A DNA stretch of 64,000 nt from Obrimoposthia wandeli (Eukaryota): positions 248,001-312,000 of the forward strand of contig CDROCS010003840.1 in NCBI GenBank assembly GCA_977020255.1. Reading direction: 5' to 3'. The notes below the pieces were generated by a model that saw only the letters and a program-made list of their open reading frames with translations, did not search any database and was not told the origin of the DNA. Below, in pieces: positions 1,187 to 14,702 of this stretch. Each line of letters starts with the position of its first letter. The first letter of the stretch is position 1. The translations under genes were made by a program, and so were the position numbers.

Positions 1187-1420
1187 ATGGTGTTACTTAT
1201 TAATAACGGATTAATTACCATGCAAACAATTACCAGACCTATTGTTAGTGATGCATTATTAACGTCACTAAAGTCTATTTGGTCAATAGATGAAGAGCAG
1301 ATATACACAAAACTAAAAGAATTGGATTTAGAGCTAAAAATAAGTGATAAAATAATATGTGTTGATGAGGGTGATACAAATAAAAAAATGATCTTCTTTT
1401 TTTTTGGGATAGAACTCTGA
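1187..1420 (+). pseudogene. Probable N-terminal part of the downstream radical SAM gene, separated by a frameshift
   Basis: The frame of ORF 1537-2736 stays open back to 1384. One extra base in A7 (1382-1388) or T9 (1397-1405) fuses the two ORFs. Confidence 0.6.
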
Positions 1421-1536
1421 ATTTTATAGATTGGTGTACTTACAATCATATAGAGCATTATTATGATTTTTTTGAAGGTAGAGTATTCCATGAAAAAGAG
1501 CAGGATTATATTGAATACATTCTCGTATCAAAATAC

Positions 1537-2736
1537 ATGTTGTATAAACTACTCCGTAGTCACCCTGCGAGCATAGATGACATACTAAGGTGGAATAAAA
1601 AATCATCTGTTAATGATTTTATTATTAATGAAACAATAAAATTGTTTGTTAAAAATCCCCCATCAGAAAATGTAGCATTGTCATTACCGACGAGAAAATA
1701 TCAAGGGTATTGTAATCAGGCCTTCATTGCATTTATTGTTGGGTACGATGAATCTCATCTCTGTTGTAGTGGATGGCAAGCATCGAAAAGTATAGGTAAC
1801 CCTTCAAAGGAACCTTTGAAGGAGATATGGAATAGCGAGCAGGCGAAAGCATTTAGAAAGTCTATCATTGACGGCTCTTATCGGTACTGTTTAGATGATA
1901 CTTGCCCATTCTTAAGCTCAGATAATAATAACTTCCCTAGATTAGAACAATATCCGACCTCTATTCAAAATGATATCATTCGTGGTGACGGTGTCATGTC
2001 TCATGGTCCGGCGTTTCTTAATTGTGGTTTTGATATGTCTTGCAATCTTTCTTGCCCATCTTGTAGAAGCGAAAAAATCATTGAAGTTGGAGAGCGAGCA
2101 GATAACATCAAAAAAATTGAAAACAAGATAGAAGAGATTGGTTCATTCTTCCATAATATTTCAATCTCAGGCTCAGGTGACCCATTCGGCTCTCCATATT
2201 CAAAAAGATTCTTAAAAAGAATTAATAGCACCATATTTCCAAATCTTAAAAATATCAACTTGCACTGTAATGGGCAGTTATTTACGCAACGTAATTGGGA
2301 GCAATTACCACAAATTTTTCAAGATAGTACAATTAGCGCAGAGATATCACTCGATGGCTCTACAAAAAAAACAATCGAGTGCAACCGCAGAGGCGTAATT
2401 TTTGAAAAGTTATTAACTAATCTAAAATTCATTGCTAAATTAAGAAACCAGCAAAAAATTAACAGTTTAAAATTTAGTTTTGTTGTACAAGATAATAACT
2501 TTCATGAAATGAGTGATTTTGTTGAATTATGTGTTGGGTTGAATGCCGACTTTATTATCTTTACTAAGATTGTAAATTGGGGAACATTTACCGAAGAAGA
2601 ATATGCTAAAAAGGCAGTTCATATGAAAACTCACCCGAATCACCATGCTTTAGTAGAAGTTATCAATAATGAAAACTTAAAAAATAGAATTGTCATGTTA
2701 GGGAATTTAGAACCATTACTTTATGATGAAAGATAA
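1537..2736 (+). CDS. Radical SAM protein with N-terminal SPASM/twitch-like Cys cluster
   Basis: CNLSCPSC (CxxxCxxC), SGSGDPF and ISLDG motifs. Upstream YC...LCC...IGN...EIWNS...C....CP pattern is SPASM-like. Confidence 0.85.
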   Translation: MLYKLLRSHPASIDDILRWNKKSSVNDFIINETIKLFVKNPPSENVALSLPTRKYQGYCNQAFIAFIVGYDESHLCCSGWQASKSIGNPSKEPLKEIWNSEQAKAFRKSIIDGSYRYCLDDTCPFLSSDNNNFPRLEQYPTSIQNDIIRGDGVMSHGPAFLNCGFDMSCNLSCPSCRSEKIIEVGERADNIKKIENKIEEIGSFFHNISISGSGDPFGSPYSKRFLKRINSTIFPNLKNINLHCNGQLFTQRNWEQLPQIFQDSTISAEISLDGSTKKTIECNRRGVIFEKLLTNLKFIAKLRNQQKINSLKFSFVVQDNNFHEMSDFVELCVGLNADFIIFTKIVNWGTFTEEEYAKKAVHMKTHPNHHALVEVINNENLKNRIVMLGNLEPLLYDER

Positions 2737-2804: not shown

Positions 2805-3821
2805 CCTGATTACCACCGAACCTCAGCTAGCTTGAGTAAATGTTGAGGCATCGGTGTTGTTTGAATACTTGAATAAATTAGCTGTTCAAGCATCTTTTCT
2901 AAATTAAACCGTCGATTGAACTTAAAACAGAACTCTGCAAGATAACGGGGTAAATGCTTATTATTGATTGAATGATAAGTGCCATGCATTGAGTTTTTAA
3001 CATTACTAATCATGGTGTTGACCCATTTAAAATAAGGCAACTCTACACAACCAGCTCCACCGCCTGTGACAATCGCATGGTGAAAGCTTTTTGCATCTTC
3101 AATACCACGAAAGCAGGCTAGACCATCAGAAATAACGAGTGATTTAGGCCTTAAATATACTTTAGCCCAGCGAGTCAGTTCTGCTTTCTTAAATCCATCA
3201 ACAGCACTAAAACGCATCCGCATAGGATGACTATCGTCATTCATTGATACGGCAGCAACAAAAGGCCGTTTCCCTTTAGCTCCTCGTCCTCGGATGCCAC
3301 GCTGGACACCGCCCCAGTAGGCATAGTCTATTTGAACGCAATCACCTAACGGTGTTTTATCGTCACGTTCTTTTATTGCTTGCATGAGTTTCTGTTTGAC
3401 TCGCCATGCCGTGTTGTATGAGACACCGAGTTGCCTTGAAAGATCAAGGGCTGAAATACCGTTTTTTTCTTGTGTTATAAGATAAATAGCTAAGAACCAA
3501 ACAGTTAAAGGCAGTTTGGAATAGGCAAACAGAGTACCCGATATCAATGAAGTTTGATGATGGCATAGGTTACATTGAAATAAAGCGCGAGATTGTAAAT
3601 GGCAATATCTGTCATGGTTGCAGTTAGGGAAACGGTATCCCGTCGGCCCTCGCTTCTCGAACAACCTTTTCAGGCATTGCTCCTCAATACCATACTTATT
3701 CATAAAGTCATGGATAGAAATGCCTTTTTGAAACTGAATTTTATTTTTAGCCATGATCTCACCCTCATGAAATCACTTATATAAGTGTAGTTAAGAAGGT
3801 GGAGTATTAGGGGTAATCAAG
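2805..3821 (-). mobile_element. Complete IS1595-family element, 1017 bp
   Basis: Terminal inverted repeats CCTGATTACC (2805-2814) and GGTAATCAAG (3812-3821), flanked by an 8-bp direct repeat AAACTTTA at 2797-2804 and 3822-3829. Confidence 0.9.
2810..3754 (-). CDS. IS1595-family transposase, possibly inactive
   Basis: N-terminal Zn ribbon, GISALDLSRQLGVSYNTAW, SDG and YLAEFCFKFNRR motifs. Normally conserved residues look substituted (RGP for RWP, FPNC for CPxC, IDYAY at the first catalytic position). Confidence 0.88.
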   Translation of the reverse strand: MAKNKIQFQKGISIHDFMNKYGIEEQCLKRLFEKRGPTGYRFPNCNHDRYCHLQSRALFQCNLCHHQTSLISGTLFAYSKLPLTVWFLAIYLITQEKNGISALDLSRQLGVSYNTAWRVKQKLMQAIKERDDKTPLGDCVQIDYAYWGGVQRGIRGRGAKGKRPFVAAVSMNDDSHPMRMRFSAVDGFKKAELTRWAKVYLRPKSLVISDGLACFRGIEDAKSFHHAIVTGGGAGCVELPYFKWVNTMISNVKNSMHGTYHSINNKHLPRYLAEFCFKFNRRFNLEKMLEQLIYSSIQTTPMPQHLLKLAEVRW

Positions 3822-4222: not shown

Positions 4223-4585
4223 ATGAAAAGATCTGCCCCTGTTGTTAGGGACGTAATGCATAAAGCATTGTTCAATGAGCGGGTTATCCACGGCGACGAA
4301 ACGACACTTCAGGTTCTAAAGGAACCCGGCAGAAAGGCGCAGAATAAATCCTATCTCTGGGCTGACTCCAGCCCTGAACAAAGTACCACGTCAGTGGTGT
4401 TTTCGAGTACTAGACGGGTAGGGCACATACTTACGGCAATACTTACAGACTTCCACATCTGGCTTGATAAGACGGCAGCTAAACTGCTTTCCCAGAGCCC
4501 GATGGGAAGGCGGTTAGTTATGCGCTCAAACAGTGGATCTACTTGAAAATGTATGTCGAGGATGGTTCTACCCTATAGCAATACG
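4223..4585 (+). mobile_element. IS66-family transposase remnant with internal deletion
   Basis: IHGDETTLQVLKEPGRKAQNKSYLW, then in a shifted frame AVSYALKQWIYLKMYVEDG. Confidence 0.8.
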
Positions 4586-4920: not shown

Positions 4921-7050
4921 TTAAGCGACAGCGTTGCGTGTAGTTGACTCTGTACTTTGGCTAATATCGATACTCCTATCAGCCGCAGCGATAGTTTCAG
5001 GTCGATGAGCGATCTGAACTGCCGGTAAGTTTAAGTCACGTATCGCTTGTATAATCTTTTTCTCGCTAGCAACATCCAGGTGGCTTGTCGCCTCATCGAG
5101 AATCAATAATTTAGGTCGCTTATAAAGCGCCCGCGCAAAGATAATACGCTGTTTTTGTCCGCCGGATACTGTGCTCCCCATCTCTCCAACCAGAGTTTGA
5201 TATCCCATAGGCATAGCTTCGATCTCATCGTGAATATTTGCAAGCTTGGCACACTCAATGGCCCTTTCCATGTCTACCTGTTCGGAGAAGAAACAAATAT
5301 TGGACAGGATTGAGCCATTAAATAACTGATCATCCTGAAAGACAGAGCCAATATCCGTTCTCAGCTCAGCAAGATTACAGTGAGAAACATCCTGGCCAAA
5401 TATTCTTATTTGCCCAGTGTTGGGCTGATAAAGCCCTAGGATCAGTTTGGCCAAGGTGGTTTTCCCGCACCCGGATCGACCGGTTATTGCCACCACCTCG
5501 CCAGGTGACACTGTAAAAGACAGGTTTTCAAACAGCACTGGGCTGTTGTCAGAGTAACGAAAGCTTAGGTTGTCTGCGCTCACTGTTACGGCATCACGTC
5601 CCGGTTTTCGGTGAGCCTGCGAGGGAAAATCTGCGTTAAGCCGCTCTTTTTTTGTTAACACTATGTCTGCCAAGCGCTCGGTATGTACAGACAACATTTT
5701 AAATTCAAAGTAATTGTTAATCAGCCCAGTAACGCTTGCCGAAAAACGTGCCTGAAAGGATAAGAAGGCAATGAGCATACCTACGGTAAAAACATCATCC
5801 AATACTAGTTTAGCTCCCAGCCACAACACCCCTGCCGTGGTAATAGCCACTAAACCCTCAATTAACACACTATAAATCATCAGTAATTTGGACTCATTAA
5901 GCTGGGCATTTCTCCGAGCAATGTTTAGATTTTTCCAAGCGTTTTCCCGCCATCCCATCCCTCCATTGATCCTAACACTTAGGATCCCATGTAGCGTTTC
6001 AAGAAAGTGACTCAGTTCTTTGGCATTCGTTGACCAGATATCTTCTTCTGCTCGCTTGAAACTGTCGAACCAGGCAAAACGTATCAGGGCATAGATTAAT
6101 GTTGTAGTGATGCATACCATTGTCAGTGTAGGGCTGTAGACCAGCATAATAACGAGCGTTCCGGTTACCAAAATAATGTCCAGTAGCGCCTGAATAATAT
6201 TCGTGGTAATTGCATGCTGGATGGTATTCAGTGAATCAAATTTAGCTGATATATCCCCCAATTCTCTCTTTTCATACCAATCAATAGGAAGTCTAATCAG
6301 ACGGTGAAAGACATTGGCAGCCCACTGCATATTAAAGTTGACCGACAAATAAATGGTGAACCATTGGCGCGCAAAACTGACTAGGCTTTGCGTCGCCGCA
6401 AGCATTAACAAGGCTACTATCACCAAGTCAAGTAAGTTGTGGTCAAAGCCGACTAAAACTTCATCAATAATAACCTGATTAACCAGTGGTGCCATAAGAG
6501 CCAACACTTCGAGTGCCACTGCAAAGATGAAAATTTTAGTAAGCGCTCGTTTAAACCCCAACGTTTTTCCGATTAGATCCCTGATCCGAACTTTTTTCCG
6601 AACATCTGTCTTTTCAAAGTCATGCGTTGGTGCCAGCTCCAGTGCAATGCCTGTGTAGTGCTTGTTCAGCTCAGTCCCAGTGACTTTTCTTACTCCCGAT
6701 GCTGGATCGTAGATTTCGTAGTACTTGTCGGTGACTTTACTGAGAACGACAAAATGGTTCATATCCCAATGTAAAATACACGGTAAAGCCAGTTGCGGTA
6801 AGTCATCCAAACTGGCATGTAAAGGCCTGGAAGAAAGATTCAAATTCTGCGCAGAACTAATCACATCCGCTAGTGTCAGCCCATGCTGTGAGAAGTTATA
6901 GCGTGACCGTAAAGCAGGCAGATCGATTTTGAAGCCATGCCAATCAGCGATCATCGCCAAACAGGCCACACCACACTCAGCCGATTCTGTCTGTCTGATC
7001 AGCGTGAGCTTTTTCCGCCATGTCCAGTCGAGACTTTCCATTTGGATCAT
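4921..7050 (-). CDS. C39 peptidase-containing ABC transporter (CvaB/MchF-like peptide exporter)
   Basis: ECGVACLAM (catalytic Cys) and LHWDMNHFVVL (His), TM domain, Walker A GRSGCGKTT, signature VSGGQKQR, Walker B ILDEAT. Likely start at 7050 overlaps the HlyD stop (ATGA). Confidence 0.93.
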   Translation of the reverse strand: MIQMESLDWTWRKKLTLIRQTESAECGVACLAMIADWHGFKIDLPALRSRYNFSQHGLTLADVISSAQNLNLSSRPLHASLDDLPQLALPCILHWDMNHFVVLSKVTDKYYEIYDPASGVRKVTGTELNKHYTGIALELAPTHDFEKTDVRKKVRIRDLIGKTLGFKRALTKIFIFAVALEVLALMAPLVNQVIIDEVLVGFDHNLLDLVIVALLMLAATQSLVSFARQWFTIYLSVNFNMQWAANVFHRLIRLPIDWYEKRELGDISAKFDSLNTIQHAITTNIIQALLDIILVTGTLVIMLVYSPTLTMVCITTTLIYALIRFAWFDSFKRAEEDIWSTNAKELSHFLETLHGILSVRINGGMGWRENAWKNLNIARRNAQLNESKLLMIYSVLIEGLVAITTAGVLWLGAKLVLDDVFTVGMLIAFLSFQARFSASVTGLINNYFEFKMLSVHTERLADIVLTKKERLNADFPSQAHRKPGRDAVTVSADNLSFRYSDNSPVLFENLSFTVSPGEVVAITGRSGCGKTTLAKLILGLYQPNTGQIRIFGQDVSHCNLAELRTDIGSVFQDDQLFNGSILSNICFFSEQVDMERAIECAKLANIHDEIEAMPMGYQTLVGEMGSTVSGGQKQRIIFARALYKRPKLLILDEATSHLDVASEKKIIQAIRDLNLPAVQIAHRPETIAAADRSIDISQSTESTTRNAVA

Positions 7051-8309
7051 TCGTTTATTCCTTGCATACGAGCAATTGGCCCCAATAACCATTCATAGAG
7101 CTTTCTCGTTTCCACATTAATATCAGCGCTGACTCGCATCCCGACTTTCAGTGGCTCTTCCCGGCCATAGACATCAATAGTGGGTTTGTGGAGTGAAACC
7201 ACTATTTTGTACAGCGTTTCGGTGTCGGAGCGGATAGTTTGATCCTGAGCCTTAAGCTCTAGGGGGGAAACGGTAGACTGGGAAATACTGAGTACCTTAC
7301 CCTTCTGAATACCAAACTTCTCATGTGGATAAGCATCGAAGCGCAATCCAACAGGTTGCCCTGTGTGTAGAAAGCCTATCGATCGACTCGGCGCATAGAG
7401 CTCCACCTGTAACTCGGCTCCATCAGGGATTATATTAAGGAGCACTTCTCCCTGACTGATTGCTTGACCGCTTTCAGCTCTTAGGGTGGTAACCTTGCCA
7501 TCGATCGGGGCGTGCACGACGGTTTCTGAGGCAGAGGTAAGCTCAATTTGTTGTTGATTCAAACTGTCTAGCTGTCTTTCAAGCTCCAGCCCCCGCATCT
7601 TTCCTTGCAACGATATATAGTCAATTTGATGCTCAGTAGCGATGCGCTCTCTTTCCAATTGCTGAATAAACAGTTTTTGATTCTCTTCTTCGGCCTGCAA
7701 GCTGACTAGGCTAGACAAATAATCTTTGAAGGTTAAATCGGAGATATATTGATTTTCCAGTAGCTTCTTGTAGCTCCCGTTTGCCTGTCGTTTTAACGTC
7801 GTCCTTACTTTGGCAAACTCGAGAGACTGCTTCGCACTCTCGACCTCTAGATCTAGCCGCGTGATCTTGCTCTCCAGATCACCAATACGGGATTTATTCA
7901 TTAGTTGCTCATAATCTCGCTGACTTCTGAGTGAAGAAAACTGCTGCGCTAGACTATGCTGTAAACGCTGGTTGATGCTTGCTCCGCTACTGTCAAACAG
8001 CTCGCTGTTTACTTTAAGCAGACCTGTTGACTTAGCAACGCGCTGCCCGTCTTTAATATGGATTTCTTCAATCACTCCACTTTGAGCGGATTTAACAGCG
8101 ATAAGACCGGTCGACGGTACAATAACACCCTCTAAATACGTTTTTTTTGTGTAGCTACCAAGCACAAGCAATGCCAAAATAGCGGAAATAACCAAGATGC
8201 AGCAAGCCGTCACTATGCGTTGATTCAAGCCTGACAATAATAGGATTTGCCCGGTTTCTGCTTGGTGCTGCTGCTGAAGATATTCTTGCCGAAAGATTTG
8301 CTGTGACAT
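7047..8309 (-). CDS. HlyD-family membrane fusion protein (CvaA/MchE-like)
   Basis: N-terminal TM anchor, long coiled coil, HAPIDGKV lipoyl-like motif, LRFDAYPHEKFG and the ETRKLYEWLLGP tail typical of bacteriocin secretion adaptors. Confidence 0.92.
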   Translation of the reverse strand: MSQQIFRQEYLQQQHQAETGQILLLSGLNQRIVTACCILVISAILALLVLGSYTKKTYLEGVIVPSTGLIAVKSAQSGVIEEIHIKDGQRVAKSTGLLKVNSELFDSSGASINQRLQHSLAQQFSSLRSQRDYEQLMNKSRIGDLESKITRLDLEVESAKQSLEFAKVRTTLKRQANGSYKKLLENQYISDLTFKDYLSSLVSLQAEEENQKLFIQQLERERIATEHQIDYISLQGKMRGLELERQLDSLNQQQIELTSASETVVHAPIDGKVTTLRAESGQAISQGEVLLNIIPDGAELQVELYAPSRSIGFLHTGQPVGLRFDAYPHEKFGIQKGKVLSISQSTVSPLELKAQDQTIRSDTETLYKIVVSLHKPTIDVYGREEPLKVGMRVSADINVETRKLYEWLLGPIARMQGINE

Positions 8310-8338
8310 ACTTAAGTTGCGCTACCTGCCCTTATCTG

Positions 8339-8363
8339 AAAAACAGGGACAAAAGTGCCCCTG
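8339..8363 (-). terminator. Intrinsic terminator between precursor and export genes
   Basis: Minus strand reads CAGGGGCAC-TTTT-GTCCCTG followed by TTTTT. Confidence 0.6.
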
Positions 8364-8406
8364 TCATATTGATATCAGGCTTGCGCCTATTGCTGAGAAT
8401 TACCGA

Positions 8407-8550
8407 TTAACGGTAGTAACTTTCTTCGCTAGTACCGCCACCGCCAATTGGGCGACCTTCTTCGTCAGTACCACTACCACCACCAGTACTACCTTCTTCG
8501 CCGCCGGCACCAGTGACTAGCTTGATTTGGTCTTCATTAAGTTCAAACAT
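8407..8550 (-). CDS. 47-aa double-glycine-leader precursor peptide MFELNEDQIKLVTGA-GGEEGSTGGGSGTDEEGRPIGGGGTSEESYYR (not in ORF track)
   Basis: Translated by hand: ATG at 8550, TAA at 8407-8409, AGGA RBS upstream. The 15-aa leader fits the M-x-E-L-x-x-x-x-I-x-x-V-x-G-[GA] pattern. Lies directly upstream of the HlyD and C39-ABC genes. Confidence 0.88.
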   Translation of the reverse strand: MFELNEDQIKLVTGAGGEEGSTGGGSGTDEEGRPIGGGGTSEESYYR

Positions 8551-8654
8551 ACATATTTCCTATATATTAAATGATGCAGCAAAAGTGCGCTGCCCACATT
8601 GAGACTGAAAACAGCCTAATTTTTTGATTACTGTTTTGGAGTAAATTATTAGCT

Positions 8655-9827
8655 TTAACGAGTCAGCCACTTTTTGTCTCGGCCGATGATTTCATCCAAA
8701 TACCCCAGAATATTGGGAATCCAAGTAATAAAACGTAGCAGGTGGGTAAATAGAGGCAGCATGGCCATTTCTAGCCAGCTGAGATTATGTGGGTTACCCG
8801 TTTTCCCGATGAAGATAAAAATAAATATTGATTCGACCAGTAGAGCTATAGTCATGATGGTCAAAGGGAGCCACATATCGAAGATTGCAAACAGCGGCAT
8901 CGCAATTAATATTGGTGGAAACAAAAATTCGGTTGCTGAAATCAGGAACCAAGGCAAAGAAACGATGCCCATAAATGGCGAAACCTTCCAAGTTTCCCAG
9001 AATGCTTCTACACGCCCCCTAGACCACCTTCTGCGTTGTCGGAACAGTGCATTGTTATTTTCAGGGCATTGAGTAGTAGCAATAGCCTGAGCGGCATATC
9101 CAGTTCGGTAGCGATTGGCCAACGCTTTCCAACACCAGGCAATGTCTTCAACCAACCATTCACTCCAGCCTCCGAGTTCTTGCACTACACTGGCTCGATG
9201 TGCGACAAATGCACCTGCAAGCACTGGCACGACTCCTAACTGATCCTGAGATGTTCTAAGTGCACCATGAACGCCTATATGCTCATAGAATTGTGATTTA
9301 CAAAGTAGGTTGCTCTCGCGATTTTTTGGCACAACGTAACCGCAAACTGCAGCGTATTCAGGGTGGCTCCAAATTTTACTGGCTAGTGAAAGAATACCGC
9401 CGGGTTCAATAAAAGTATCACTGTCAACTATGATGTAAATTTCTCCCGTAGCGACCTGCCGCTCTAGGGCAAAGTCTAATGCAGCACCTTTTCTCCCCGT
9501 ATTTTCATCTCTGGTCAGTAATAGGTATTCTTGCTTTCTTTTTTTCTGCAACCATATTTCTACGCTAGCTGGTGTTTTATTTGTAGAACCATCATTAATA
9601 ATAAGCACTTGGATTTTTGACGGATATTCCTGTACATCAACTTTCTCAAGCGCAGTTAGTAATAAGTTTTCATCCTCATTATAAAAAGGGACAAACACTG
9701 TAACTAAAGGAAGATCATTCCTAATTGTTTCTGGTTTCCACTTCAGCATAAAGATAGCCATTAGAGCCATAACGCACATAAGCTCTACTATAAGCGGTAC
9801 TGATATTATTATTGATAGCGTGTCCAT
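8655..9827 (-). CDS. Family 2 glycosyltransferase, processive membrane type (PgaC/IcaA-like)
   Basis: VPFYNE, INDGS, VDSD, VED and QRRRW motifs; N- and C-terminal TM segments. Confidence 0.9.
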   Translation of the reverse strand: MDTLSIIISVPLIVELMCVMALMAIFMLKWKPETIRNDLPLVTVFVPFYNEDENLLLTALEKVDVQEYPSKIQVLIINDGSTNKTPASVEIWLQKKRKQEYLLLTRDENTGRKGAALDFALERQVATGEIYIIVDSDTFIEPGGILSLASKIWSHPEYAAVCGYVVPKNRESNLLCKSQFYEHIGVHGALRTSQDQLGVVPVLAGAFVAHRASVVQELGGWSEWLVEDIAWCWKALANRYRTGYAAQAIATTQCPENNNALFRQRRRWSRGRVEAFWETWKVSPFMGIVSLPWFLISATEFLFPPILIAMPLFAIFDMWLPLTIMTIALLVESIFIFIFIGKTGNPHNLSWLEMAMLPLFTHLLRFITWIPNILGYLDEIIGRDKKWLTR

Positions 9828-9849
9828 TACACCAACCTACTTATGATAC

Positions 9850-11232
9850 TTAAATCAGATAATCTGACATTAATTCATGTATTTTTTTTCTTGAACCACA
9901 ATTACCTTTCAGTCTCGGGTCAGAAAATATGGTAAATCTCGAGTACTTTATGTTTCTGTATTTGAATTTAGGCTTTGCTTCCTGATAGCCAACTAATTCA
10001 AGTGCTGAATGTATTTCACTTGCAAATCTATTTTCATCAAAATCACAATCAGACAGTCTCGATACGTGCTCTTTTCCCTTTCTTAATACTTCTTTTATTT
10101 TTTTTCCGATTTCGGTAAGGTCTTTTGTCTTTAAGGGGATACCACACTCAATAGCGGTATACCTATTTTCCTGCTCTTCCAATGTTGAAATGAACTTATC
10201 TATCAGCGCTCTCCGTTGCTCAAGAGCAAGACCTGACTGGCTATGTTTATTTAAGTGATAGAAAAAAGTTTCTAGCCACTCGGTTATTCCACAGTGGTCA
10301 TCCCAAGTAGCACCTAGGCCTGATGTAAGTAAAACGTTAGAAAAATCACCTATACCTGACATTGTTCCTAAGTCTAAAAAGCGTCCATCAAGTGCAATAT
10401 TTGAACTGGTTAACGAACCATGTGGCATCCCTTTCACCCGGCTAGCCGCCATTTGCGTAGCAAACCGAATAACAAACCGTTCAACTATGTCGTAAATCGG
10501 GGTATCGCTCCCTGTTTTAGAACGTTCGTTTTCCTCCAGTATCGTTATCGACTCTTCAACATACTTGTGTGTTGCGTCGCGAAGGCGTACGTATTCCTGC
10601 TTTGGCCAAAAATTCAACGCTGGTTCGAAGTGTGCTGGTCGGGTAGCAACTTCTCGAATCATGATCGAGCAAGGCTGCTCAACGATGTCTCCAAAAGTAT
10701 TGGCGCCAACGATAGTCTGAGGAGTTCTTATGACAGCAATAATGCGTAAAGCACCAAAAGGCAGTTCCCTATGACAGATTTCGCTCCAGATGGATTCACT
10801 CAACGCTTCACTCAACGGTAACTTACCTGATGAATGTCCTTCATCAACATTGATTGCAACTAGAGGGTTGACACCGTTACCTTTAATCTGCAACTGGCCG
10901 TTCAACCCACAGCGCGCGCTGCCTCCATTCCCCACATCACCAGTATTACCATACCGATCTGCAAGAAACATTTTTTTGTCACCCAAGTTTAGATCTGTAT
11001 CGTCAGCATAGCCGCGGCTAACATAAGCAAAGTTATCTAATATGAGTTTTTCCGCACTTTTGATGCTAATACCATGCTCTTCAAGATAGTTTTCATTGAG
11101 CCAGGAAATTTCGGGATTTTTTATTTTATAGGCCGGATATTCGACAAAACTGCACTCTGCAAGGCAGTCTCCAAAGATCAACGTATTATCTCTGTCTGGG
11201 CTATCGTAAGTCTCAAGAATGTTATCTTTCAT
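9850..11232 (-). CDS. MchC/MceJ-like protein (SelO/YdiU pseudokinase-like fold)
   Basis: ADRYGNTGDVGNGGSARCG, QIKGNGVNPL, HSSGKL and HGSLTSSNIALDGRFLDLG motifs. Confidence 0.8.
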   Translation of the reverse strand: MKDNILETYDSPDRDNTLIFGDCLAECSFVEYPAYKIKNPEISWLNENYLEEHGISIKSAEKLILDNFAYVSRGYADDTDLNLGDKKMFLADRYGNTGDVGNGGSARCGLNGQLQIKGNGVNPLVAINVDEGHSSGKLPLSEALSESIWSEICHRELPFGALRIIAVIRTPQTIVGANTFGDIVEQPCSIMIREVATRPAHFEPALNFWPKQEYVRLRDATHKYVEESITILEENERSKTGSDTPIYDIVERFVIRFATQMAASRVKGMPHGSLTSSNIALDGRFLDLGTMSGIGDFSNVLLTSGLGATWDDHCGITEWLETFFYHLNKHSQSGLALEQRRALIDKFISTLEEQENRYTAIECGIPLKTKDLTEIGKKIKEVLRKGKEHVSRLSDCDFDENRFASEIHSALELVGYQEAKPKFKYRNIKYSRFTIFSDPRLKGNCGSRKKIHELMSDYLI

Positions 11233-11238
11233 GTTAAT

Positions 11239-11727
11239 TTACCAACTATATACTGGTGATGAACTTCCCGGTTCTCGGTAGTAAATGCTTTTTACACCTG
11301 ATTCTTTTAGTTCTTTTTTTATTTTTATCAGGTCTTTGATAAATTTCATTTCTGGACAAGGCAAGCAGATATCAAGCATGATAAGATTTGCCCCCTCATT
11401 CCACTGAGAAGGATGAGGAACGAATTGAGGGTTAGTCAAATACTCATCGAGTGTTTTATCATTAACCCATGCCCAAACTAAATATCCAGAAGGATATTGA
11501 TCGAACTCTCCTTCAAGAAGTTTAATTTGTTCATTATTTATTGCTGGTATCATCCAGTGATAAAATGAACCGATGCTAATTTTTTTTCTATCATTATTTT
11601 TTGCATAGACATAGCAAAGATCACCAAGAAGAGCCCGTCGGGTCTCAAATTGAATATTTCTAAGTGAAGTCTCCAGGATTATTGAATTCCAAGCGTGAAT
11701 AGTTGGTATATCGTTATCAATTATCAT
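11239..11727 (-). CDS. HlyC/RtxC-family acyltransferase-like protein (MchD/MceI-like)
   Basis: PAI..EQI, PSGYLVWAW and HPSQWNEG..L..LD...P motifs; 162 aa; ends 6 bp upstream of the MchC-like gene. Confidence 0.8.
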   Translation of the reverse strand: MIIDNDIPTIHAWNSIILETSLRNIQFETRRALLGDLCYVYAKNNDRKKISIGSFYHWMIPAINNEQIKLLEGEFDQYPSGYLVWAWVNDKTLDEYLTNPQFVPHPSQWNEGANLIMLDICLPCPEMKFIKDLIKIKKELKESGVKSIYYREPGSSSPVYSW

Positions 11728-11926
11728 CTGTCACCATTATTTATACGCTCACCACAAAAAATTGTCTTATATTAAAATTTCATTAAGTAAAACAAGAATT
11801 AATATATATACCAATAATTATATTAATAGAAGGGAGGTGAAAAAGAAACTCGACAAGGTTCTTAAATATAACTAATTAACAATAGAAGGGGACATGAAAT
11901 TTGCGACTAGATTCATGATTTTAAAT

Positions 11927-12110
11927 AATACCCAATCAACTTGAAGCTGCTTGCTTTAAGCTGAAAATTATCGTTAATTCGATACGTCAATGAGTCTGCG
12001 ATTTCTGGAAGAGTGACAGTAAAAAATTGGTCTATAGCTTCCTTGAAGTAACGTTTACTCTTGAAGTAAACGTTATTCTTCGCCTTCTCGTTCATCACTT
12101 TAAAAAGCTA
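11927..12110 (-). mobile_element. IS630-family transposase C-terminal remnant with right end
   Basis: KVMNEKAKNNVYFKSKRYFKEAIDQFFTVTLPEIADSL..RINDNFQ, followed by an IS630-like end (TCAAGTTGATTGGGTAT). Confidence 0.75.
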
Positions 12111-12149: not shown

Positions 12150-12419
12150 TTAGAGCTGGTAACTGTTCGGTTGGTATTAGCAATGTAATACTACGAGCGA
12201 CTCGGGGGAATTTTTGAATGAGCCCCTTTTTTCTAAGGTGTTAATCATTTGGTTAACACTGGGCGGAGTGACCTCAAAATATTTCTGCATATCAGTGTGT
12301 GCAGGTGGTACACCATTGGGTTCGGTGTACTGAGAAATAAATGCTAAATACTGGCCTTGCTTGTCAGTAAATGAAAAAACGTGGTTCAATGATCGACATA
12401 TCAAGCTATCTGTGATCAA
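12150..12419 (-). pseudogene. Small MarR/LexA-N-type winged-HTH protein, frameshifted near the C-terminus
   Basis: FTDKQGQYLAFI...PPAHTDMQKYFEVTPPSVNQMINTLEKRG; the expected LI...ARSI continuation is in another frame. Confidence 0.55.
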
Positions 12420-12451: not shown

Positions 12452-13220
12452 ATGAATATCAAATATATAGTTGAATTAAGCAAACAAGAAAAAGACGATT
12501 TAAACTAACTAACCTCGAAAGGAAAATCATCAGAGAGAATGCTTAAGCGAGCAAATATTTTGCTGATGGCTGATTGTCGAAACCATCAGGACAAAGACAT
12601 TTCAAAGGCGTTAAATGTTGGTTCTACTACAATTGGTCGTACGAAAAAGAGATTTGTTGAGCATGGTTTGACTGAAGCCTTTAATGAAGGTGCTCGATTA
12701 GGTATGCCCCGGAAATTAGATGGAAATCAAGAGGCCTTATTGATTGCTCTAGCATGCAGTAAACCACCAGAAGGTTGCTGCCGTTGGGCACTAAATTTGA
12801 TTGCCGACAGATTCATTTCTTTGAGTGATTTGAATGTTGTTTCAATCGAAACTATTCGTCGTCGATTCAAAGAAAATGATTTGAAGCCTTGGCAGAAAAA
12901 AATGTGGTGTGTTGGGAAAATGAATACCGACTATATTGCCCAAATGGAGCACATACTCGATTTATATGCTAAGCCAGCAAATCCAGCTCAACCCGTTGTT
13001 AATTTCGACGAAGCGATGAAACAACTCGTTTCTGATATTACGCCACCAAGCCCAGTCAAACTAGGCAACTCGCTCGAATGGACTATGAATATAAACGTGT
13101 GTGTGGCAAACATATTCATGTTTTTTGACCGCCATAATGGCTGGAGAAAAGCGAAAGCAACACTGAGTAAAAAAGCCAAAGATTTTGCCCATTGTATGAA
13201 AGATCTAGTTGATGAACTAA
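12452..13220 (+). mobile_element. IS630-family transposase pseudogene (premature stop near 12505, truncated 3')
   Basis: MNIKYIVELS..., GRPRKL-like motif, ACSKPPEG..RWAL, LKPWQKKMWC and VVNFDE. Confidence 0.8.
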
Positions 13221-13281
13221 ACCTGCCCGTGGATTCGCGAATAAATATAACCAGAATCGGTTGTGTTCGATGCGTAGCATC

Positions 13282-13569
13282 TTAACCAGTTAGAGACTTC
13301 AAGCAAGTTATGAGTTCGTAATCAAATTCGATGTCGATATTAGCCTTGGGGATTGAACGACAAGCCAGAATTTCATTTGAACCGACAAAAGCCATCGCAT
13401 CTTGCTGGTCTACTGCACCTGACTTCAACTTACAGCGGCACGCACCGCACATGCCGTTACGGCATTGATATTCAGGTTGAATACCGGCACTTTCTAATTG
13501 GGTAAGCAAAGATTCACGGCTATTGCCGTGAACCTCTTGACCGTTAACCTTAATGGTTAGTCGGCTCAT
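13282..13569 (-). CDS. yfaE: 2Fe-2S ferredoxin, RNR maintenance protein
   Basis: CRNGMCGAC...C motif; ATGA overlap with the nrdB stop. Confidence 0.9.
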
Positions 13570-14702
13570 AGCTCGAAGTCACCGAGATCGTCTGCACTTA
13601 CATCGTTGTCGATTTGACCAACAAGGTAAGAACTGATTTCAGCTTCTTGTGGCGCAACCTGTACATTATCAGAAGATAACCATGAGTTAATCCATGGAAT
13701 CGGGTTCTGATTAGCACCAGGATAAGCCTGCTCAAGACCTACCGCTTTCATGCGCAGGTTTGTGATGTATTCAACGTACTGACAAAGAATTTCTTTGTTA
13801 AGACCAATCATCGAACCATCTTTGAATAGGTATTCTGCCCATTCTTTTTCTTGTTCAGCGGCTTCTTTGAAAATATCAAAACATTCCTGCTTACATTCTT
13901 GCGCAATGTCAGCCATTTCTGGATCATCGTGTCGACCACGAAGAAGGTTCAGAATGTGTTGAGTACCCGTTAAATGCAATGCTTCATCACGGGCAATTAG
14001 CTTGATGATTTTCGCATTACCTTCCATTAATTCACGTTCAGCAAATGCAAATGAACATGCAAAGCTAACGTAGAAACGGATAGCCTCAAGTGCATTAACA
14101 GACATCATACAAACGTATAATTTCTTTTTAATGTCACGCAGATTAACAGTGATCGTTTCACCATTAACGGTATGCTTACCTTCGCCTAAACGGTGATAAT
14201 CACTCGTTGCTGCAATTAGGTCGTCATAGTACTTAGAAATATCACCAGCACGTTTGACGATATATTCATTTTCGACGATATCATCAAAGACAATGGCAGG
14301 ATCATTCACGATATTACGGATAATATGCGTGTAAGATCGCGAGTGAATAGTCTCAGAGAAAGACCATGTCTCAATCCATGTCTCTAGCTCAGGAATAGAC
14401 ACTATTGGCAGAAGAGCAACGTTTGGACTACGGCCTTGAATCGAATCAAGCAGTGTTTGATATTTCAAATTACTGATGAAAATATGTTTTTCATGATCTG
14501 GTAAGTTGTTGTAATCAATGCGATCACCAGATACATCAACTTCTTCTGGACGCCAGAAGAAGGAAAGTTGCTTCTCGATGAGTTTCTCGAAAATCTCGAA
14601 TTTTTGTTGGTCATAACGAGCAACATTAACAGATTGACCAAAGAACATCGGTTCTTTCATCTGATCGTTATTAATTTGACAAAAAGTGCTATACGCCATC
14701 AT
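13566..14702 (-). CDS. nrdB: Class Ia ribonucleotide reductase beta subunit
   Basis: [20 protein letters not shown] and DEALH motifs. Confidence 0.98.

Follow-up and report, generated by a model that had tools for sequence, protein, structure and literature searches.

The 64,000-nucleotide stretch of Obrimoposthia wandeli DNA analysed here (assembly GCA_977020255.1, contig CDROCS010003840.1, positions 248,001 to 312,000 of the forward strand; hereafter the window) carries an intact six-gene operon, very likely devoted to a small acidic peptide that is made, modified and exported. The operon appears, from its gene content, to encode a class-IIb-microcin-like system, a variant outside class IIb proper, in which a ligase pair of the MchC/MchD type stands beside a membrane-embedded glycosyltransferase of family GT2. 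The system is a widespread family and is not unique to the O. wandeli genome. By analogy with the class IIb microcins, we consider it on balance probable, if only just, that a carboxylate of the peptide is ligated to a saccharide of the N-acetylglucosamine (GlcNAc) type, rather than to glucosyl-enterobactin, and that the modified peptide is then exported.

The six open reading frames (ORFs) all lie co-oriented on the minus strand within 6.8 kb, and the ORF list of the window reproduces the coordinates, gaps and overlap given in a preliminary description of this DNA. In order of transcription, they encode an HlyC/MchD(MceI)-like acyltransferase of 162 amino acids (aa; 11239..11727), an MchC(MceJ)-like, nucleotidyl-transferase-like protein of the SelO/YdiU fold (460 aa; 9850..11232), a processive-type GT2 resembling IcaA, NodC and PgaC (390 aa; 8655..9827), a 47-aa precursor composed of a 15-aa leader of the double-glycine type and a 32-aa core (8407..8550), an HlyD-family type I secretion adaptor (420 aa; 7047..8309), and a C39-peptidase ABC exporter (PCAT), the longest ORF of which comprises 723 aa (4921..7092). 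The HlyC-like and MchC-like genes are separated by 6 bp, the MchC-like and GT2 genes by 22 bp, and hlyD and the ABC gene overlap. Searches with hidden Markov models of protein families, together with fold matches, bear out the six identities that had been proposed. The ABC reading frame is likewise present at 4921-7092, but its start at 7092, which overlaps hlyD by 46 bp, is doubtful; a start at 7050 yields 709 aa and an ATGA overlap with the hlyD stop codon, and it is probably the correct one because the orthologues measure 706-711 aa. All six genes, the precursor included, are under purifying selection, with a nonsynonymous divergence (dN) of 0.10-0.30, a saturated synonymous divergence (dS), and a dN/dS ratio of <0.11 wherever it is defined (0.08-0.11 for the precursor). 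The arrangement cannot be ascribed to chance, since dozens of species share the same gene order.

Scanning one representative genome of each species yielded 56 MchC-like loci, and mining of their neighbourhoods recovered the same gene set in 33, where a same-strand gene of the GT2 subfamily completes the HlyC-MchC-GT2 triad together with HlyD and PCAT. Of the 31 loci with an MchC identity of 37% or more to the window protein, 30 have GT2, and the GT2 proteins form over 120 clusters at 90% identity. The hosts of the triad are mostly Vibrionaceae, with Chitinibacteraceae (four carriers: Chitiniphilus, Jeongeupia chitinilytica, Iodobacter and strain HSL-7), Janthinobacterium and Dryocola in addition, and a separate look-up adds Serratia fonticola. 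The same operon was found in Photobacterium lipolyticum, with proteins 76-84% identical to those of the window, and in Vibrio cholerae MZO-2; it also occurs in Aliivibrio fischeri, S. fonticola, Enterovibrio coralii and on a plasmid of V. alginolyticus. Three gene orders were observed: HlyC-MchC-GT2-peptide-..., MchC-HlyC-radical SAM-GT2-... in the Chitinibacteraceae (SAM, S-adenosylmethionine), and peptide-...-HlyD-ABC-SelO-HlyC-GT2 in V. mediterranei, whose GT2 is only 32% identical. The adjacency of GT2 to the ligase genes is kept across all three, and the GT2 gene often overlaps its ligase neighbours. Because GT2 is conserved together with the ligase pair through three gene orders and down to ~32% identity, we argue that this glycosyltransferase takes part in maturing the peptide.

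Several of these loci have features of their own. In V. mediterranei, a second, different sugar enzyme sits between the gene for an 86-aa peptide with a double-glycine (GG) leader and the exporter; this 452-aa protein (locus L068, 1765-3123) matches the Pfam families Gly_transf_sug and TcdA_TcdB-type glycosyltransferase. In V. maritimus JCM 19240 (locus L014), the whole operon is present with every gene in two to three ORFs, a state due either to decay of the copy or to poor assembly. Directly downstream of the P. lipolyticum operon lies a gene for a 628-aa protein with PKD and chitin-binding CBM_5_12 domains (locus L001, 17663-19549), a placement that may be coincidental.

The preliminary description held that the ligase pair is retained, and this is confirmed by the names of homologues, by alignments with Photorhabdus MchC and MchD, and by Pfam HlyC, which place the two proteins in the MchC/MchD (MceJ/MceI) families. 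The HlyC-like protein matches Pfam HlyC at E=1.7e-13 (51 bits against a gathering cut-off of 25), and at all related loci compared, an orthologue of 162-174 aa directly precedes the MchC-like gene. In an alignment of 21 family members including Photorhabdus MchD, residues W58, Q67, W85, W109, G112 and D119 are invariant; His57 varies, and the catalytic His of the toxin-activating acyltransferases (TAATs) is unconfirmed. D119 may correspond to Asp93 of HlyC, a mapping that is not claimed here. The Pfam HlyC domain is common to this protein and the RTX toxin-activating acyltransferases (HlyC/TAAT), whereas the Lys-acylation substrate of the latter is not found here. Acylation of Lys in the RTX manner was considered and excluded because the 32-aa core contains no Lys, and among the ORFs of the window no RTX protoxin gene lies near the operon.

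Homologues of the 460-aa protein carry the names "MchC protein" or "SelO family", and its match to Pfam SelO (E=0.019; 14.2 bits) falls under the cut-off of 22.8 bits. Searches of PDB sequences with phmmer gave nothing meaningful for either member of the pair, and none of the HlyC-like, MchC-like and precursor proteins has an equivalog in NCBIfam; a structural link for the MchC-like protein emerged only from profile alignment and fold comparison. Its AlphaFold model, with a predicted local distance difference test (pLDDT) score of 81, retrieves Escherichia coli YdiU and Pseudomonas syringae SelO in Foldseek (E~1e-11; template modelling (TM) score 0.59). A profile alignment to YdiU indicates that the Lys of the KGxGxxP motif, R193/R198, the metal-binding Asn278 and the DFG-like Asp287 are retained, and these ATP- and metal-binding residues are invariant in the family alignment. 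The kinase-like fold and this residue set are thus common to the MchC-like protein and the SelO/YdiU AMPylases/UMPylases. The two differ in that sequence similarity is marginal, that the protein studied here always has an HlyC-like partner, and that the Asp of the T-D-N motif, the catalytic base of SelO, is Ser277 (motif H-G-S-L-T-S-S-N). The base is absent from all eight MchC-family proteins aligned, the canonical MchC of Photorhabdus asymbiotica among them; the position is mostly Ser, or Pro in Photorhabdus and Cellvibrio, and is followed by an invariant Ser-Asn. Adenylation of a carboxylate requires no catalytic base, and the loss of this Asp therefore fits adenylation and the known chemistry of MceJ/MceI, and not AMPylation of a hydroxyl; by analogy, the substrate here is presumed to be a carboxylate, as opposed to the hydroxyl used by SelO/YdiU. 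The MchC superfamily as a whole comprises 1,126 clusters at 50% identity (E <= 1e-10), of which the short form of ~460 aa is a small branch.

The glycosyltransferase had been described as unrelated to the GT1 enzymes IroB and MceC, and its families, fold and motifs establish it as a membrane-embedded synthase of the processive type. It matches the Pfam GT2 families at 1e-17 to 1e-19, and Glyco_transf_21 as well. Its model (pLDDT 90) has the complete architecture of a membrane-embedded processive synthase, a GT-A domain with a transmembrane bundle. The best structural matches in the PDB are hyaluronan synthases, PcManGT, BcsA and chitin synthases, and those in Swiss-Prot are IcaA, NodC and PgaC (TM 0.75-0.81 over the full length). 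The motifs D79-G-S (DDGS), D135-S-D137 (DSD), E227-D228 (ED) and Q264-R-R-R-W268 (QRRRW) are invariant in 24 orthologues. The enzyme resembles NodC, IcaA and PgaC in size, in its single N-terminal and several C-terminal membrane helices, and in its D/DxD/ED/Q(R/Q)xRW motifs, but it is only ~20% identical to them, is encoded inside a peptide-export operon and has no partner genes. It scores 135 bits (2.5e-39) against the TIGR model PgaC_IcaA and 90 bits against the NCBIfam model of NodC, where the equivalog cut-offs are 422 and 550, respectively, and neither PgaABD (PgaA/PgaB/PgaD), IcaBCD or NodAB neighbours nor a porin partner was found beside the operon in the window or at the P. lipolyticum and V. 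cholerae loci. By both measures, equivalog cut-offs and partner genes, it is not an orthologue of PgaC/IcaA or of NodC. Its closest relatives outside such clusters, those of Lysobacter (38-41% identical), adjoin a polysaccharide deacetylase of family CE4, the usual companion of synthases of GlcNAc polymers (NodC-NodB, PgaC-PgaB, IcaA-IcaB). The nearest structural relatives (all of them GlcNAc polymerases), the CE4 neighbour and the chitin-degrading habit of the hosts together suggest that the sugar is an oligomeric handle of the GlcNAc type. One of the relatives, in Lysobacter sp. TAB13 (locus L067, 5913-7779), forms a NodC-NodB-like pair with the deacetylase at a locus without MchC or HlyC genes.

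The precursor ORF is preceded by an AGGAAA ribosome-binding site 7 nt upstream, and it encodes the sole peptide of its kind in the window. Its leader ends V-T-G-A, which aligns with V-S-G-[A/G] in 11 paralogues. The 32-aa core that follows the G-A cleavage site has a computed monoisotopic mass of 3091.29 Da, in agreement with an earlier hand calculation of about 3091 Da, and a charge of about -5. It is acidic, hydrophilic and Gly-rich, with three Glu-Glu pairs and the C-terminal sequence S-E-E-S-Y-Y-R, so that the peptide indeed does not end in Ser. Two or three paralogues with the same leader occur in close relatives, compared with the single copy of the window, and their C-termini read G-R-Y, R-Y-R, Y-Y-R or Y-P-Y-R. 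A third precursor gene of P. lipolyticum (locus L009, 11863-11959) is frameshifted, with its leader and its ...G-E-E-G-Y-Y-R tail in different frames; P. jeanii has an intact orthologue of it (locus L010, ORF 11783-12058), with the leader Met inside the ORF.

Two precursor subtypes are found in the family, and the HlyC-MchC-GT2 triad is common to both. The acidic subtype, to which the peptide of the window belongs, also occurs in P. lipolyticum, P. jeanii, P. nomapromontoriensis, V. cholerae, a Vibrio metagenome-assembled genome, V. maritimus (decayed) and Enterovibrio coralii. These precursors are 41-62 aa long and have the leader M-F-E-L-x3-Q-I-K-L-V-S-G-[A/G] and an acidic core; 11 of 12 cores contain exactly three Glu-Glu pairs within otherwise divergent sequence, the last pair being 3-5 residues from the Tyr/Arg C-terminus. 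The larger subtype, of many Vibrio, Aliivibrio and Photobacterium species as well as Serratia and Dryocola, is 81-126 aa long and Gly-rich, has the leader M-Y-N-L-...-V-D-G-G-G, and has small membrane ORFs and the gene for a ~330-aa radical SAM protein next downstream. Glu-Glu as a universal recognition motif was ruled out: it cannot be what the triad recognises, because the larger Gly-rich cores lack it.

Between the precursor gene and hlyD lies a hairpin resembling a terminator or attenuator (8337..8365, minus strand; a 10-bp stem, a 4-nt loop and U5), which a simple terminator scan did not list. The region 8312-8410 of the same strand folds at -30.3 kcal/mol (z = -3.4), a stability that none of 200 shuffled sequences attained. 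The adaptor matches Pfam HlyD_3 (3e-18) and TIGR01843, type_I_hlyD (3e-40). The exporter matches Peptidase_C39 (4e-35), ABC_membrane (5e-41) and ABC_tran (3e-35), and its translation contains the Cys (ECGVAC), His (NHFVVL) and DP motifs as well as Walker A and B.

These features can be assembled into a pathway. The 47-aa precursor would be made in excess, with the hairpin after its gene attenuating transcription before the export genes. The membrane GT2, judged by its fold, motifs and relatives, would use a uridine diphosphate (UDP)-sugar, most likely UDP-GlcNAc, to build a short beta-linked saccharide at the cytoplasmic face in the manner of NodC. With ATP, the SelO-fold MchC-like protein would activate a carboxylate of the peptide, most likely the C-terminal one by analogy with MceJ/MceI, possibly those of Glu side chains. 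Its HlyC-fold partner would then pass the peptidyl group, once activated, to a hydroxyl of the sugar, yielding a peptide-saccharide ester. We infer these ligation steps from the homology to MceIJ and the lost catalytic base of SelO. Finally, the C39-ABC exporter would remove the leader by cleavage behind Gly-Ala15 and, together with HlyD and a channel in the outer membrane, secrete the 32-aa modified core, a step that family membership strongly supports. The glyco-conjugate product is a well-motivated hypothesis, and candidate roles outside the cell are those of an antibacterial "Trojan horse", a signal or a metal binder.

To our knowledge, the class IIb microcins are the only case in which a MchC/MchD pair has been put to a characterised use. 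Both they (MccE492, mceABCDEFGHIJ, of Klebsiella; MccH47/M, mch, of E. coli) and the operon have a double-glycine-leader precursor, PCAT and HlyD, homologues of the maturation pair (MceJ/MchC and MceI/MchD), and a glycosyltransferase in the cluster. In MccE492, the MceJ/MceI complex attaches glucosylated enterochelin to the C-terminal Ser84 (PMC6071977). The glycosyltransferase of the microcins is a soluble IroB-like GT1, whereas that of the operon is a membrane GT2 synthase; the microcins have a Ser-rich tail ending in Ser, whereas the core here has 32 aa, is acidic and ends Y-Y-R; and the immunity gene is absent here. The MchC-like protein is also shorter, at 460 aa against ~500-700 aa for most family members, and is ~32% identical to Photorhabdus MchC. 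As the preliminary description stated, the operon holds no siderophore esterase. Neither an IroD-like esterase (MceD/MchS1) nor an IroB-like GT1 (MceC/MchA) was found in the operon, the flanks within the window or the related loci examined, a search that did not extend to the remainder of the genome. With the Ser-rich tail, the GT1, the esterase, the enterobactin supply and the adjacent immunity gene all wanting, the system does not count as a member of class IIb.

A parallel in gene order is the locus AWOD_p920_61-66 on plasmid pAWOD920 of A. wodanis, where genes for an HlyC-like protein, an MchC-like protein (37% identical), a GG-leader peptide, HlyD and PCAT follow one another as in the window, but without GT2; the peptide is Gly-rich, 112 aa long, with the leader MFCL...VDGGG. 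A correlation has been described between this bacteriocin locus and inhibited growth of Moritella viscosa and other A. wodanis isolates, and its sixth gene is listed as a CAAX/Abi protease (PMC4462113). In V. cholerae MZO-2 and AM-19226, mchC, a cryptic unannotated mchD and export genes had already led to the prediction of an undiscovered microcin; the precursor was not found and the GT2 was not mentioned (Dudkiewicz et al. 2012, PMC3281104). A 2026 study of Serratia describes MchC and lysine-acyltransferase genes beside genes of the non-ribosomal peptide synthetase type, at another microcin locus (PMC13101503). No characterised cluster that joins the MchC/SelO-HlyC pair to such a glycosyltransferase was found by searches aimed at one in the full-text literature, in which subscription journals are largely uncovered. 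The claim that the system is undescribed thus stands for the GT2-containing cluster, which is uncharacterised in the searchable literature, but not for the V. cholerae mchC, mchD and export genes, flagged as early as 2012. MvcC of V. cholerae belongs to a different locus and is an unmodified class IIa-type microcin. The operon also bears a likeness to the glycocins (sublancin, glycocin F), which are ribosomal peptides that receive sugar from a GT2-family enzyme and leave through a C39-ABC exporter. Glycocin glycosyltransferases are soluble and non-processive, and place single sugars on Cys, Ser or Thr of helical, disulfide-bonded Gram-positive peptides; glycocin systems have no MchC/MchD pair, in contrast to the operon.

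Several observations weigh against ligation to a GlcNAc-type saccharide. The product is a prediction, and so are its sugar, the atom of attachment and the length of the chain. GT2 is absent from pAWOD920 and from P. frigidiphilum (HlyC-MchC-peptide-HlyD-ABC), and the ligase pair can therefore use another acceptor, or the glycosyltransferase is supplied in trans. The C-termini are not conserved across the family, and the three Glu-Glu pairs do not occur in the larger subtype. A processive GT2 normally extrudes its polymer to the outside, out of reach of cytoplasmic enzymes, and the topology is workable only through the precedent of NodC. No small membrane ORF of the immunity kind was found in or beside the operon here, in P. 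lipolyticum, in P. jeanii or in V. cholerae, and with the core strongly acidic and hydrophilic as well, the label "microcin", in its antibacterial sense, is unproven for the acidic subtype. The fold of GT2 is matched also by beta-monoglucosyl-diacylglycerol synthases. Lastly, the copy of the window stands in an island ridden with insertion sequences (IS), with a single precursor and a broken accessory gene.

Some of these points can be read in other ways. The sugar might be placed on Ser, Thr or Tyr of the precursor itself, as in the glycocins and perhaps as a chain, leaving the MchC/MchD-like pair to add a separate modification such as nucleotidylation of the conserved C-terminal Tyr or another acyl transfer. 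Every core does contain Ser/Thr plus Tyr near the C-terminus, GT2 enzymes glycosylate peptides in glycocin systems, and the enzymes of the SelO/YdiU fold matched here AMPylate or UMPylate hydroxyl side chains. The GT2 of the operon, however, has the architecture of a membrane synthase and the acceptor-binding signature QRRRW, unlike the soluble peptide glycosyltransferases of the SunS type; the MchC-like protein lacks a base with which to deprotonate a hydroxyl; and the only characterised MchC/MchD pair yields an ester between a carboxylate and a sugar. We regard direct glycosylation as unlikely. It is most improbable that GT2 makes a glycolipid, either joined to the peptide by the ligase pair (a lipo-glyco-peptide) or serving a membrane role unrelated to the peptide. 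The Glyco_transf_21 match and the cyanobacterial beta-monoglucosyl-diacylglycerol synthases (TM 0.74-0.78) speak for such a product, but the better structural matches and all top NCBIfam matches are GlcNAc polymerases, the closest relatives outside the clusters are paired with a CE4 deacetylase, and a lipidated acidic peptide of 32 aa would be an odd cargo for a PCAT.

GT2 might instead take no part in tailoring and make an exopolysaccharide resembling poly-N-acetylglucosamine or chitin, for self-protection or as a matrix for the peptide, with the ligase pair using another acceptor. This would accommodate the two relatives without GT2 and the want of any other immunity candidate in the acidic subtype. 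We hold it to be very unlikely, as GT2 adjoins and often overlaps the ligase genes in three gene orders, loci of the Gly-rich subtype combine GT2 with distinct small membrane ORFs such as one would expect of immunity proteins, and no PgaD/IcaD, PgaB/IcaB or porin partner is present. A further proposal concerns only the copy of the window, which, in a real family, could be an inactive remnant within an IS-rich island under decay. Fragments of IS1595 and IS66 lie right beside its ABC gene, the accessory radical SAM gene is split and inverted, one precursor remains against two or three in relatives, a strong promoter match is missing directly upstream of the first gene, and V. maritimus has an apparently fully decayed copy. 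Six full-length ORFs that match their orthologues in length (162/460/390/420 and ~709 aa), intact catalytic motifs, a ribosome-binding site and a hairpin nevertheless make inactivity decidedly unlikely.

The island holds a further gene that probably belongs to the system. The preliminary description confined the system to 4921-11727; the six-gene core indeed lies inside this span, but a split radical SAM gene of the SPASM type (1187..2736, plus strand) lies outside it. It consists of a 77-aa ORF (1187-1420) and a 399-aa ORF (1537-2736), matches Pfam SPASM (2e-07) and Radical_SAM (2e-06), and is 61% identical over 446 aa to a 509-aa gene of the P. jeanii cluster, where a methyltransferase and this SPASM-type gene follow ABC and a second copy is also present. 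It is 36-38% identical to the two copies which, with a methyltransferase, lie inside the Iodobacter and Jeongeupia clusters, and shows no similarity to the ~330-aa radical SAM protein of the Gly-rich subtype. P. lipolyticum retains only a stub. In the window the gene is on the opposite strand and is parted from the operon by an IS1595-family transposase (2810-3754, minus strand) and an IS66 transposase fragment (4223-4546, plus strand), and 1187-2736 is probably a broken, IS-displaced accessory of the operon system. On this comparison the six genes are the core, and the radical SAM gene is a dispensable accessory, broken here. A PqqA-like Glu-Tyr cross-link was dropped as the core chemistry, the radical SAM gene being absent or broken in most loci of the acidic subtype.

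On the other side of the operon lie a transposase-like ORF with only a helix-turn-helix (12539-13285, plus strand), a yfaE-like ferredoxin gene (13282-13569) and an intact nrdB (13566-14702). The operon is assigned to an IS-rich island, adjoining nrdB-yfaE, because ORFs of the transposase type bracket it on both sides. Its G+C content is somewhat above that of the flanks, and its genomic neighbourhood differs between species; the varied neighbourhoods and the IS-rich island of higher G+C are consistent with horizontal transfer. Upstream of the operon, an 80-aa ORF (12177-12419, minus strand) has weak matches (~4e-05) to the N-terminal DNA-binding domains LexA_DNA_bind and Fe_dep_repress, and may represent a small regulator or the remains of a gene; it was not seen beside the operon in relatives. 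The best sigma-70-like match of the region (12462-12435, minus strand) is located just upstream of this ORF.

The hosts are dominated by chitin degraders, namely Vibrionaceae, the small family Chitinibacteraceae, Janthinobacterium and Serratia, a distribution that shared habitat and gene transfer could explain equally well. That the hosts are almost entirely chitin-degrading, and that Lysobacter has a related GT2 beside a deacetylase, hints at a tentative extension of the ligation proposal, which we think rather unlikely as it stands. In it, the triad would make conjugates of peptides with chitooligosaccharides or other GlcNAc oligomers, which would act as nutrient-mimicking Trojan horses and enter competitors through chitin-oligosaccharide uptake (e.g., chitoporin). 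Such conjugates would be the counterpart of the siderophore-microcins that use catecholate receptors, and the three Glu-Glu pairs would be multiple sites of ligation or metal binding.

Class IIb microcins have so far been treated as an enterobacterial curiosity specific to siderophores. If the ligation proposed here is true, the precursors and the additional enzyme that eluded the 2012 analysis of V. cholerae MZO-2 and AM-19226 (PMC3281104) would now be identified, and peptide-to-sugar ligation would be a general route with interchangeable sugar modules, present in dozens of marine and chitinolytic species. It would yield a new kind of secreted glyco-peptide, and it would give a biochemical role to a branch of the SelO family that lacks the base for AMPylation.

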